From NCBI GenBank assembly GCA_025558095.1, contig JAIVFI010000003.1, forward strand, positions 682,001-746,000: a DNA stretch of 64,000 nt. The letters run 5' to 3'. Of this stretch, positions 54,114 through 59,301 are shown one piece after another; position 1 is the first letter of the stretch; every line of letters begins with the position of its first letter. The position numbers and the translations under genes were made by a program. Below the pieces are notes generated by a model. That model was not told the origin of the DNA, did no database searches, and saw only the letters and a program-made list of their open reading frames with translations. Origin of the DNA: Hyaloraphidium curvatum SAG 235-1 (taxonomy: Eukaryota > Fungi > Monoblepharomycota).

Positions 54114-56340
54114 ATGCCTGACGGCGCGATGGCGATGCCAGCTGCGCCGCTGAAGCCGGGCGTGCCCCGCGGGGCGGACGCCGACGAGCGGCTCGACGCG
54201 CGGATCCGCCGGCTCGAGCTGTCGCTGTCGCTGGACAGAATGCTCCCCGCGCTGCCGTCGGCGCGCGTGCACTCCGACCGCCGCGCGCCCGACCGGTGGG
54301 CGACAATCGACGACGACGACGAAGAGGGCGGGCCGGCTGGCCGGGACTCCGACCGCCCGCGCTCGTGGTGGACCGCACTCGTCGGCGGCGGCCGGCTGGC
54401 AAAGGACAGGCCCGCGGCAAACGGCTGCCTCGCATCGGGTGGCAGTCCGAAGAGGCAGGCACGGCCCGGCGAGCGCTCGCCGCCCGCCGGCACCCCCGGC
54501 GCCGATCCCCCGGGGGCCGTGCACCGCTCCGGCTCGGCGCAGCTGCCGCCGTCGCGCAAATGGGCCGGCGACCCGCACAGCCCGCAGATGCCCGCCATCC
54601 TCGTCAACTCGCGCGGCTCCTCGGCCACGGACTTTTCCTCGGGCCGCGCGTCCTACGCCTCCCTGCCCAGCTCGCCGCGCACTGGCACGCTCTCCAACGC
54701 CGCCCTGCAGGCGTTCCGCGGAGACGAGATAAAGAGCCTGTCGGGCCTGACCTTGTTCGGCGACTCGGAGGGCGAGCTCGCCGCCCTGCAGCGCAACCTC
54801 CCCCCGTCCTCCTCGGGCTCCGACCCGCAGCCCTCGGCTGCCCAGCACTCCAAGGGCACCGCCAACGGCAAGGCCCTGCCGCCCAAGCTGGTGCTCAACA
54901 GCGACCTCTCGAGCGGCAAGCTGGCCGCGATAAAGGAGTCGGCTGCCGATGCCGAGGACCGGGAGCGCAACAGCCGGCACCGCGAGGTGGTCGAGCTGCA
55001 GAACGGGACCAGGCCGCTGCCGCCCGAGTTTGTGTCGCAGTACCGCATCGGGGAGCTGCTCGGCGACGGGGCGTTCGGGTTCGTCATGACGGCGACTTGC
55101 CTCAAGACGGGCAAGGAGGTGGGCTGCGGAGCTCTTGTGCAACGCGCTTTTGCTGACGACGATGTGCAGGTCGCGGTCAAGTTCATCCTGCGGGAAAAGA
55201 TCGCCAGCGAGCTGTGGACCGTCGATCCGCGCTTCGGCAGGCTGCCGATGGAGGTGCACGTGCTCAGCAGCCTGGACCACCCCAACATCGTCAAGTACCT
55301 GGGCCATTTTTCCGACGCCGATCGCTTCATCATGGTCACGGAGCTGCACGGGACCCAGTGGCACGCCGACAACCACGAGCTCAACTCGAACCGCAACCCC
55401 GGGCTGCTCAAGGAGACGCCGACGAGCCCGCACCTCGAGGGGTCCGCCGCCGCCGAGTGCTCCCCGCTGCATCGGTTGACCCCGGAGCAGGAGAGGAAGA
55501 TCAAGCGGAGGGTGCCATGCGACCTCTTCCAGTGCATCGACGCACGTGGGTCACCCTGCGCATATGGCAGCCGATCGCGCTCCCTGACTGGCGGACCGCC
55601 GCAGATTCTCGGCTCCTGGATAGCACGTGTCGGTACATCTTTGCCCAGATCGCCCTGGCGGTGCACTACATGCACTCCAAGGGCTTCATCCACCGCGATC
55701 TCAAGGACGAGGTGGGTTGCCTGCCTTGCACAAACTTTAAAGTCTCACCGCAGGGCCCCGCAGAACGTCGTGGTGGACGCGGACTACAACGTCAAGCTGA
55801 TCGACTTTGGCTCCGCGGCCCGCATTCCTCGCACGCCGGACGAGTACTTCACCTACTCCAAGTTCAACGGGACTCTGCACTTTGCCGCGCCGGAAATCTG
55901 CCGGCGGCAGCCGTACCGCGGACCGGAGGCGGAGGTCTGGTAGGTTGCCGCAACCCTGGCTCTGCGAAGCGACAGCCGACGAGTCTCGCAGGTCGCTGGG
56001 TGTGCTGCTCTTCATCATGGTCTTTGCCGAGAGCCCGTTTGCGACGCGGGACGATACCATCAAGGGCCAGTTCCGCTTCCCGCGGTCGGACGTCGATCCA
56101 GGTGAGCTCGTGCATCTGAGGCGTCCGCGTCCCGCCGCTGATACCGCGATCGTTCCGCAGCCTGCGCCGACCTGATCCGCAGGATGCTGACCTACGACGA
56201 GAAGGCCCGGATTACCATTGACGAGGTGGGTCTGCCGCGTCTGCGTTGCACGAGAGACCTGACGGGTCGACGCGCAGATACTTGAGCACGAATGGCTGAA
56301 AACTGACATTGTTTCGTTGCGGAGGAGCGGGAGGCAGTGA
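54114..56340 (+). CDS. Ser/Thr protein kinase, PASK/PIM-like catalytic domain with low-complexity N-terminus
   Basis: LGDGAFGFV, VAVKFI, PMEVHVL, HPNIVKY, ELHG...DLFQCID, HRDLKDE|NVVVD, LIDFGSAA, GTLHFAAPE, PYRGPEAEVW. The start codon is uncertain. Confidence 0.88.
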
Positions 56341-56521: not shown

Positions 56522-58644
56522 ATGCTTCGGCAAACAGGCGCAGGTACCGCTCCTCCTTTACTCTGCGGCGCATCGCGCCCCTAGGCCCCACCCTGACGCG
56601 CCGCCACGCGCCTAGATATGACCCAGGCCACCTCCTTCGTTTTCGAACAAGCGCAGAGGGGTTGGCATTCAAACGGCGGTAAAGCGGACCGCCGGACGTA
56701 TCCGGCCTACATGCGGCGAGGTTGGCTGCCCCGCGGTCTCGGGAACGCGCCACCGCTCATGGGCGCTGCAGAGTCGCCGCAGGTGACCAAGACCAAGATC
56801 GTGGCCACCATCGGACCGGCGTCGTCATCGTTGGACGCGATCGCCCAGTTTGTCGAGGACGGTGTCAACGTCTTCAGGCTGAACCTGAGCCACTGCACCC
56901 ACGAAGTACGGTCCGCCTGGCGTCTGGCGTGGCCGGGGGGCTGACCCCGGAACCCGGCGCAGTTCGCCCGCAAGGTCATTGAGGATCTGCGGTACTACCT
57001 TTCCTCGACCAAGACCGTGGCGGAAGTGGGCGTCTGGATCGACATCAACGGGCCCAAGGTCCGCTCGGGGCCTCTCAGGGACGGGAAGCCGGTGCAGCTC
57101 AAGGCGGGGCAGGACTTCTACGTCGTCAACGACGAAAACACCATCGGGGATGAGACCAGGATCGTGACGACGTACACCAAGAAGCTGCTGGAGATTGGGG
57201 ACAAGATTGGTGGGCTGAACCTGCCTGTGCCGCTTCTTTTGCTCAGCGTCCGCCACCGCGACAGTCATCGACGACGGCATGATCTCGCTCACCGTCCAAG
57301 AGCGCGTGCCGGAGGGAGTGCGCTGCACGGTCGACAACAACGGTGGGGCAGTTTGTTGACTGCCCCTGGGTTCCGGCTGACCCGGTTTGGACTGCAAGGC
57401 GAGCTTGGGGAGTTCAAGGGCATCAACTTCCCGTCCCACGTCCTCGAGGACCTGCCAGCCGTGTCGGAGAAGGATGCCGAGGACCTCAAGTTTGCGCTGG
57501 ACATGGAATGCGACTTCATCAGCGTGTCCTGCATTCGGAACCTGCACGACGTCGAGGAGGTTCGGATGCTGATCGGAAACTCGCGGATAAAGGTCCTTTC
57601 CAAGATCGAAGTGCGTTGGTGGCGGAAACCTGCCCGGGAGTGGTTCTGATCGTGGCTCGGATGCCAGAACGAGCGCAGCTTGGAGAATTTCGAGGCCATC
57701 CTGAGGATCAGCGACGGCATTGTCATTGACCGCGGCTATCTCGGAGCGGAGGTGGACGTCGAGTTCGTCACGACGGCACAGAAGAGGATCATCGCCAGCG
57801 TAGGTGGTTCGCCGGCGAGGTGGTTGCCGGAACTCACGCGCGGAGCGCAGGCAAACGTTTCGGGCAAGCCCGTCTTTGTCAGTAATCAAATGCTCGAGTC
57901 GATGCGGGAGCATCCGCGGCCGAACCGGTCGGAGTCTTCGGATATTGCCAACGCCGTGCTGGACGGGGCGGACGGTTTGGTCCTCAGCGCCGAGACGGCG
58001 GTCGGAAAGTACATCCACGAGAGCGTGCGGATCATGCGGCGGATAGCATGGCACGCCGAGCGCGGCATCAACTACGTAGACTGGCAGGGGAAGCTCATGC
58101 GGACGATCCCGAAGCCGATCGGGGTCTCGGAGAGCATCGCCTCCTCGGCTGTCTTGTGCGCCCGCCAAGTGAACGCCGCGCTCATCATGTGCATCACGGA
58201 GTTTGGCGGGACCGCGCGGCTGATCGCCAAGTACCGGCCAAACATTCCCGTCATCGTCGCGACGCTGGTGCGCCAGACGGCGAGACAGATGGCGTCGTCC
58301 TTTGGGGTCGTCCCGTACTACCACCCCGGCGAACCCGCCAGCATCGTTTACGAGTCGCTCAAGTTCGCCGTGGACCTCGGTTTGTGCCATCCAGGTAGGT
58401 TGTCCGGCGCAAACAGGGGAAGCGAGGCTGATCGGCGGGTCTCCAGGGCAAATCGTCGTAATTACGTCCGGTCAGCACATTGGCTTCGTCGAAGGTACTA
58501 GGAGCGCGTCCGTCACGCCCTACAGGAGCTGATGCCCGCCCTCCAGGGACGACGACGAAGATGCAGGTTCTGACCATTCCAGAGGGCCTTGCCCAGAGCC
58601 CGAATGGAGAACCCAACGGCCATGGCAACGACGGCTCGGACTAA
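56522..58644 (+). CDS. Pyruvate kinase-like protein with divergent active site, multi-exon
   Basis: [91 protein letters not shown] and C domains are all present. Confidence 0.9.
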
Positions 58645-58711: not shown

Positions 58712-59301
58712 TCATTGAGGTCCCTTGTTGTGGACATCGTTCTGCCCCTCCCGATTCCTAGCAATCTCGATGGCAAAGAACTGCAACCTCGTTGCAAATG
58801 TGGTGTTGTCCGGGTCATACTCGCCGGCCGCGTTCAAACGCAGCAGGGTGCCGAAGTTGTAGTCCTGAACGCGGTCCTTGTAGCTTTCTATGAATGGCCG
58901 CCACAGCTCTTTCGCCGCAGGAGACTTCAAGTCCTCCTCGTCCAGAACGGCCACGTTGAGATCCGGGAAGGTAGTTCGGAAATCTGGGCCGAGATCGGTC
59001 ACGACAGCGGAGGGTGAGTGGCACTCCCGCACGCACTAGTATAGATGTCGTCGTCCAGACTGCTGAACGTCAGGTACAGGTCATCGGGCCGGGAACAAGC
59101 ACCCACGGAGTCAGCTTCAGCTTCGCGGCCGGCAGACTTGAGAGGAGCTTCATGTATGTCTCCGCGTGTCGAAATGCCTTCTCCGCCCTATCGCACGAGT
59201 CCATCACCGCCACCGGGCCGCTCCGGAACTGCTTCGCACCATTGGCGCTCGATATCGGGGTTGTTCTCGACCGTTTCGGGGTCTATGCTCGAGAGAGACA
59301 T
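58712..59301 (-). CDS. PBDC1: PBDC1/DUF757 (polysaccharide biosynthesis domain-containing) protein, 4 exons
   Basis: NNPDIERQW|AEKAFRHAETYMKLL, DDDIY, FRTTFPDL, LKSPAAKELWRPF, VQDYNFGTLLRL, RLQFFAIEIARNREG. Confidence 0.93.

Follow-up and report, generated by a model that had tools for sequence, protein, structure and literature searches.

A chytrid-wide pyruvate kinase paralogue with exchanged metal-site and pocket residues in Hyaloraphidium curvatum

Pyruvate kinase (PK) is, to our knowledge, among the best-studied of enzymes, and its residues Asp296 and Thr328 are treated as invariant (human PKM2 numbering is used throughout). Asp296 and Glu272 are the protein ligands of the enzyme-bound Mg2+, while Thr328 contacts the carboxylate of phosphoenolpyruvate (PEP) and takes part in proton transfer. 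Lysine at position 117/118 marks K+-independent PKs, mostly bacterial, whose Lys117 cluster, as defined by Oria-Hernandez and Ramirez-Silva, has a co-evolving L113/Q114/K117/(L,I,V)120 signature; eukaryotic PKs are described with glutamate at that position (PMC8835810). In Drosophila, divergent paralogues of carbohydrate enzymes have in many cases lost active-site residues and are predicted to be inactive for that reason (PMC11836677), and an engineered human PKM2, '4A' (R73A/K270A/D296A/T328A), is glycolysis-defective (PMC6626593). Here we describe a PK-like gene of the fungus Hyaloraphidium curvatum SAG 235-1 in which both Asp296 and Thr328 are replaced. It occupies positions 56522–58644 of the forward strand of the window, a 64,000-nucleotide stretch of contig JAIVFI010000003.1 (positions 682,001 to 746,000), and comprises nine exons with a stop-free spliced frame of 556 amino acids.

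A first-pass annotation of the window had described a clean spliced frame and a full PK architecture, and both were borne out (nine GT..AG exons, Pfam domains PF00224 and PF02887, and a predicted PK fold), as were the codons it quoted for the altered motifs (Table 1). The motif DRGYLG gave a gap-free alignment with ARGDLG in PKs of solved structure from E. coli, yeast and human, as did SNQMLESM with ATQMLESM of the Cryptosporidium, Toxoplasma, yeast and human enzymes; DINGPK and SC occupy the positions homologous to DTKGPE and SF. The window protein carries N115, K118, C244, D293, Y296, N328 and C79. One of the two protein ligands for the enzyme-bound Mg2+ was kept (E272) and the other replaced by tyrosine (D296), and with asparagine in place of Thr328 the canonical PEP-carboxylate and proton-transfer residue is absent. 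The catalytic lysine was present, as were the residues in contact with phosphate and nucleotide (R73, R120, K207 and K270 taken together).

Compared with canonical K+-dependent eukaryotic PKs (PKM2/PKLR, Cdc19 and the canonical copy of this genome on contig C21), the variant shares the three-domain fold, the Pfam domains and 13 unchanged active-site residues (R73, N75, D113, R120, K207, S243, K270, E272, R294, G295, R342, S362 and E364), and it falls within the eukaryote-type cluster of the PK tree. It differs from them by a full fixed set of ten exchanges: K115N, E118K, F244C, M291V, V292I, A293D, D296Y, T328N, C358G and M360V. The aligned residues indicate that the rewiring is larger than previously listed, with F244C, M291V, V292I, C358G and M360V as additions. 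The variant cannot be a textbook PK, because Asp296, as Mg2+ ligand and oxalate residue, and Thr328 are both gone while Lys118 is present.

The other described systems resemble the variant in part. Like the K+-independent PKs, the variant clade has lysine at 117/118, and position 113/114 is hydrophobic (Ile, Val, Leu or Met), in line with the logic of the L113/Q114/K117 signature (PMC8835810). At 114/115, however, Asn takes the place of Gln, and at 120/121 Ser or Thr that of Leu, Ile or Val; in the window protein K118 and Ile114 occur together with Asn115 and Ser121. Moreover, K+-independent PKs keep Asp296 and Thr328, and the variant lies outside the K117-type cluster of the tree, represented in this genome by the loci on contigs C35, C15 and C16. 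PKM2 '4A' shares the altered positions 296 and 328 with the variant, which, however, keeps R73 and K270, has Tyr296 and Asn328 instead of alanines, and gains Asp293. In Drosophila, extra PK genes likewise exist beside a ubiquitous canonical PK (PMC11836677), but, compared by description, those copies are young, lineage-specific and mostly testis-restricted, whereas the chytrid variant is old and phylum-wide and carries fixed replacements rather than simple losses.

A HMMER search with exon 7 alone separated a top group with 52–66% identity, well above ordinary PKs, and all readable members of this group displayed DRGYLG and xNQ. Searches with one variant and with a profile of eight variants recovered ~58 named proteins, all from Chytridiomycota and spanning Chytridiomycetes of many orders, Monoblepharidomycetes and Caulochytrium. 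Variants scored at least 587 bits, and canonical PKs of all kinds from 508 bits down. Canonical PKs of the same species were obtained when a canonical chytrid PK was used as the query, giving at least 22 species with both forms. A full-text literature search yielded no description of the variant clade, and a protein atlas look-up returned only generic bacterial PK clusters.

Among 54 full-length orthologues, the changed residues N115, K118, C244, D293 and Y296 were conserved in 100%, G358 in 98%, N328 in 96% (the remainder having Ser), I292 in 92%, V360 in 88% and V291 in 87%. Of the unchanged residues, N75, D113, K207, S243, K270, R294, G295, R342, S362 and E364 were conserved in 100%, R73, R120 and E272 in 98%, and Ser77 in 82%. 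The canonical comparison set was picked by motifs, and its 100% at motif positions is by construction; in an unfiltered collection of ~330 PK-family sequences, the combination A293/D296/T328 was seen in 200 and D/Y/N in 71. Since the same residues recur in more than 50 independently sequenced species, the substitutions are not sequencing errors.

The clade also takes in a partial Rozella allomycis protein and several environmental sequences. A transcript of the holozoan Pigoraptor (M293/Y296/D328 with N115/K118) joined the base of the clade on a long branch, and we tentatively count it as a member on these residues and its placement. One environmental member (L015:96-1583) is an uninterrupted open reading frame (ORF) of 1488 nt on a 1585-nt contig, whereas the genomic orthologues examined span 2.1–3.5 kb with introns; this suggests that the contig is derived from mRNA, i.e. 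that the variant is transcribed in some chytrid. Separately, distant PK homologues (P0027, P0045, P0058, P0080, P0099, P0108 and P0143) displayed other degraded or altered signatures at 293/296/328 (for example AET, AKT, AGN and SKP), so active-site-divergent PK paralogues seem to have arisen repeatedly.

Phylogenetic analysis was conducted on 55 rows using IQ-TREE with the LG+C20+F+G4 model. Twenty-six variant sequences formed a single clade (Shimodaira-Hasegawa-like approximate likelihood ratio test, SH-aLRT, 99), and the chytrid canonical PKs formed a separate one (SH-aLRT 98). The window gene paired with the Gonapodya variant (100) and the PK of contig C21 with the canonical PK of Gonapodya (98), each copy thus tracking the species tree. 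The two clades were sisters in the best tree with weak support (67.9), the variant branching among eukaryote Glu118-type PKs and the K118-type sequences of C35, C15 and C16 elsewhere. Given this clade structure with two copies, the duplication is, as judged from the tree, no younger than the chytrid radiation; the weak sister grouping is compatible with a fungus-specific as well as with an older event. Should the Rozella and Pigoraptor sequences be genuine members, it may reach back to the root of Fungi or beyond, and those fungal groups not among the matches would then have lost the variant.

Mean pairwise identity across the 22 two-copy species was 64% for the variant versus 79% for canonical PK (the variant evolving 1.7 times faster), and variant and canonical PK of the same species were 39–46% identical. 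Comparison with the Gonapodya orthologue gave a nonsynonymous divergence (dN) of 0.19 and a proportion of synonymous differences (pS) of 0.80; synonymous sites are saturated at this level, and therefore only the dN value and a dN/dS ratio (omega) well below 1 can be stated. Three intron positions, together with their phases, were common to the H. curvatum variant and its Gonapodya orthologue. On these comparisons the variant lineage is an old, strongly constrained, chytrid-wide orthologous group rather than an oddity of a single gene.

A six-frame Pfam scan of the 31.9-Mb H. curvatum assembly revealed four PK loci besides the window gene, all with Asp296 and Thr328, the window gene being the only PK locus of the genome without them. 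The PK on contig C21 is of the canonical Glu118/Asp296/Thr328 type with all motifs in place (RMNFSHG, DTKGPEIR, SKIEN, ATQMLESM and LSGETAKG, and MVARG/DLG interrupted by an intron). The window gene is thus not the sole PK of this genome, which has the C21 enzyme and three further loci, and the first-pass annotation's view that it is not the glycolytic PK is supported. Two of these, on C35 (~349-350k) and C15 (~730-731k), are intron-rich Lys118-type genes with ARGDLG and ATQM, and the third, on C16 (~182k), is intronless, bacterial-like and very divergent (branch length 5.1). All three are of the Lys118 type (DLCGPKIR, DMCGPKVR and DLAGPKIR) and cluster together in the tree, apart from the eukaryote-type PKs.

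An AlphaFold2 model built from a 51-sequence alignment displayed the three-domain A/B/C fold with an intact lid domain (predicted local distance difference test, pLDDT, 90.9; predicted template modelling score, pTM, 0.89), only the last 13 residues having a pLDDT below 50. The best Foldseek matches were human PKLR and PKM2 (template modelling score, TM, 0.88; 37–38% identity). D293 (residue 249) directly follows the barrel strand 245-248, Y296 (residue 252) lies in the first turn of helix 250-256, and E272, N328, S243/C244 and S362 are each predicted at or just past the end of a neighbouring strand. In the model D293 is on the catalytic face of the barrel, beside the strand bearing K270 and E272, a placement that would make a takeover of the metal-ligand role geometrically plausible. 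F244C, M291V, C358G and M360V all shrink side chains in the layer beneath the site, as would be expected had space been needed for the tyrosine ring.

Our preferred reading, held with about even confidence and derived from sequence, is that the variant still works as a phosphotransferase, one that does not depend on K+ and whose metal and acceptor pocket has been rebuilt. Replaced and retained residues are both strictly conserved, which argues that the active site is in use. The exchanged half of the site accommodates the enzyme-bound Mg2+ and the monovalent cation as well as PEP or pyruvate on its carboxylate/C3 side; the half handling phosphate and nucleotide is unchanged, from which we infer that phosphoryl transfer is retained. 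The charge of K+ would be provided by Lys118, as happens in PKs independent of K+, and Asp293, where its barrel strand ends on the C-terminal side beside Glu272, would replace Asp296 as the second metal ligand. The acceptor pocket would take a new shape through Tyr296, Asn328 and Cys244, and the result may be an altered substrate, metal preference or kinetics. The variant probably does something other than ordinary glycolysis. We regard as possible, and put forward only tentatively, a more specific form of this proposal, in which a new activity arose on the PK scaffold: the metal ligand would have moved from the helix turn (296) to the strand end (293), the pocket would have been adapted to a substrate other than pyruvate or PEP, such as a different 2-oxo, 2-hydroxy or enol-phosphate acid, and the lineage, present from the base of Fungi onwards, would have disappeared in Dikarya.

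Several observations weigh against a working phosphotransferase. The contact of Asp296 with the metal is direct and is lost with D296Y, tyrosine being a poor Mg2+ ligand. Oxalate is recognised in PK by R294, G295 and D296 (PMC4383751), and a PKM2 mutant including D296A and T328A is inactive (PMC6626593). Asp293 is not universal either, the Pigoraptor relative having Met293 and Asp328. The gene context yielded no candidate substrate, the kinase gene next to the variant being kept only within Monoblepharidomycetes. Finally, the conserved phosphate and nucleotide residues suit a non-catalytic ligand sensor equally well.

The main alternative is a pseudoenzyme that performs no phosphoryl transfer and still binds nucleotide or a phosphorylated metabolite, acting as a sensor, scaffold or regulatory subunit, possibly in mixed tetramers with canonical PK. 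From the residues we consider this a realistic, if less probable, explanation. Loss of one of the two protein Mg2+ ligands together with Thr328 amounts to the loss of essential residues by which pseudoenzymes are recognised, and the same two positions are part of the engineered dead PKM2 (PMC6626593). Precedent exists in Drosophila, which has PK-family paralogues and in which one-third of the surveyed carbohydrate-enzyme paralogues were predicted to be pseudoenzymes (PMC11836677), and among our distant matches there were other PK homologues with degraded active-site signatures. Arg342, which touches the adjoining subunit across the A-A' interface (PMC4383751), was conserved in every orthologue. 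Docking of homologous PKs through their common interface would be expected irrespective of biological role. However, each replaced residue is itself 96–100% fixed across the whole phylum, K270, E272, S362 and E364 are kept along with R120 and K207 of the lid domain, and the changes form a coordinated repacking, with F244C, C358G, M360V and M291V all freeing space about Tyr296, instead of losses at scattered positions. The remaining catalytic residues are fully conserved, which by itself is not decisive either for or against turnover. The first-pass annotation had suggested a sensor, a regulatory subunit or a kinase for a new substrate in place of the glycolytic PK; its exclusion of the glycolytic role stands, no result favours a regulatory subunit in particular, and the sequence cannot choose among the three.

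It is unlikely that the variant is an ordinary isozyme, i.e. a second PK that is independent of K+, has an atypical metal site and converts PEP and adenosine diphosphate (ADP) to pyruvate and adenosine triphosphate (ATP) with roughly normal kinetics. The contacts to the PEP phosphate and to ADP are intact, and yeast PK mutants at the equivalent of Thr328 keep partial activity, both of which would suit such an enzyme. In addition, the public NCBI protein for this gene, 'pyruvate kinase [Hyaloraphidium curvatum]' (P0176, 501 aa), scored 414 bits over its full length against the NCBIfam equivalog TIGR01064 (cut-off 306.4), and since automated models place the variant above the equivalog cut-off, it is uniformly named 'pyruvate kinase' in all public records. 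That score is, however, 177 bits below that of a canonical chytrid PK (591 bits). Furthermore, Asp296 and Thr328 are absent only from the variant clade, a few oddities and fragments in the collection of PK-family sequences, and the pocket residues Phe244 and Met360 are changed too.

A decaying duplicate, or an assembly or sequencing artefact, is hardly credible, given a spliced frame that is intact and identical to the public model, key residues that are 96–100% fixed and recur across independently sequenced species, a constraint (64% versus 79% identity, dN 0.19 with saturated dS, shared introns, a rate only 1.7 times the canonical one) that excludes decay, and a high-confidence fold prediction.

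A whole fungal phylum, with the amphibian pathogens Batrachochytrium and the laboratory model Spizellomyces among its members, has long kept a second PK with Asp296, Thr328 and eight other residues exchanged and the remaining catalytic machinery untouched. As all records read 'pyruvate kinase', two equivalent isozymes are entered in metabolic reconstructions of chytrids, although one of the two is probably something other than a PK. The clade represents a natural experiment in active-site plasticity, in which a metal ligand may have migrated on a triosephosphate isomerase (TIM) barrel, and offers a concrete candidate, amenable to assay, for either a metabolite sensor or a novel activity in fungi that diverged early.

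The exon structure is given in Table 1. All eight introns are GT..AG, 51–72 nt long, with CTRAY-like branch points. Exon-by-exon Pfam searches matched the PK barrel PF00224 (profile positions 2-328) and then PK_C PF02887; six of the seven exon pieces matched one or the other, one of the six just below the cut-off. P0176 starts at ATG 56759 and is 100% identical to residues 56-556 of our model, which independently confirms seven of the eight introns. At the N-terminus, 7 of the first 12 residues of the 556-aa model were identical to those of the annotated Gonapodya prolifera orthologue, a local match score reached by only 1 of 5000 shuffles, and in Gonapodya, too, a very short first exon is followed by a phase-1 intron, placed one codon off the H. 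curvatum position. The upstream stretch 56522-56758 also holds the R-x-[HY]-P-A motif found near the N-terminus of other orthologues. Because of the Gonapodya match and this motif, the longer model is probably right and P0176 N-terminally truncated.

Table 1. Exons of the variant PK gene in the window, with the codons of key residues
Feature	Position	Strand	Content
Exon 1 (putative)	56522-56543	+	22 nt with ATG, then a phase-1 intron; not in the public model
Exon 2	56616-56905	+	N-terminal peptide with R-x-[HY]-P-A, start of PK barrel, RLNLSHC (Arg73 56876-78)
Exon 3	56963-57209	+	DINGPKVR loop (Asp113 57041-43, Asn115 57047-49, Lys118 57056-58), part of lid (B) domain
Exon 4	57265-57342	+	Lid (B) domain; identical to P0176
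Exon 5	57399-57610	+	KGINFP (Lys207), SVSC (Ser243; Cys at Phe244 position 57530-32), SKIE (Lys270 57602-04, Glu272 57608-10)
Exon 6	57668-57799	+	IVIDRGYLG: Asp at Ala293 position 57728-30, Tyr at Asp296 position 57737-39
Exon 7	57851-58394	+	SNQMLESM (Asn at Thr328 position 57884-86), Arg342, LSAET (Ser362, Glu364), most of C domain
Exon 8	58447-58494	+	C domain
Exon 9	58547-58644	+	End of C domain, low-confidence acidic/Gly tail, stop TAA 58642-44

Intron 6 (57800-57850; 51 nt) is in frame and stop-free, ORF 57680-58501 running through it uninterrupted, and if it were retained, the DRGYLG helix and the SNQM strand would be separated by 17 additional residues.

Immediately upstream of the variant PK, and likewise on the forward strand, is a protein kinase gene (54954-56234), whose kinase-domain exons were collinear and 50–68% identical with the gene upstream of the Gonapodya orthologue (L011:796-3749), and a Pkinase gene also precedes the orthologue P0200 (an 81% identical relative). 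Just downstream, ORF 58712-59032 on the reverse strand encodes a PBDC1-domain protein (Pfam E 5.6e-37), seen in the same position and strand on the P0200 contig. The upstream kinase and downstream PBDC1 gene are syntenic within Monoblepharidomycetes only. As a functional link the kinase was rejected: its tandem with the variant PK was absent at the loci in Spizellomyces, Batrachochytrium and Polychytrium, and it therefore gives no clue to function. In Batrachochytrium dendrobatidis (L013:985-2464, reverse strand) and Polychytrium aggregatum (L014:1-824, reverse strand), a PP1-type phosphatase (STPPase_N and Metallophos) was located a few kb upstream on the opposite strand, an arrangement that probably reflects residual synteny.

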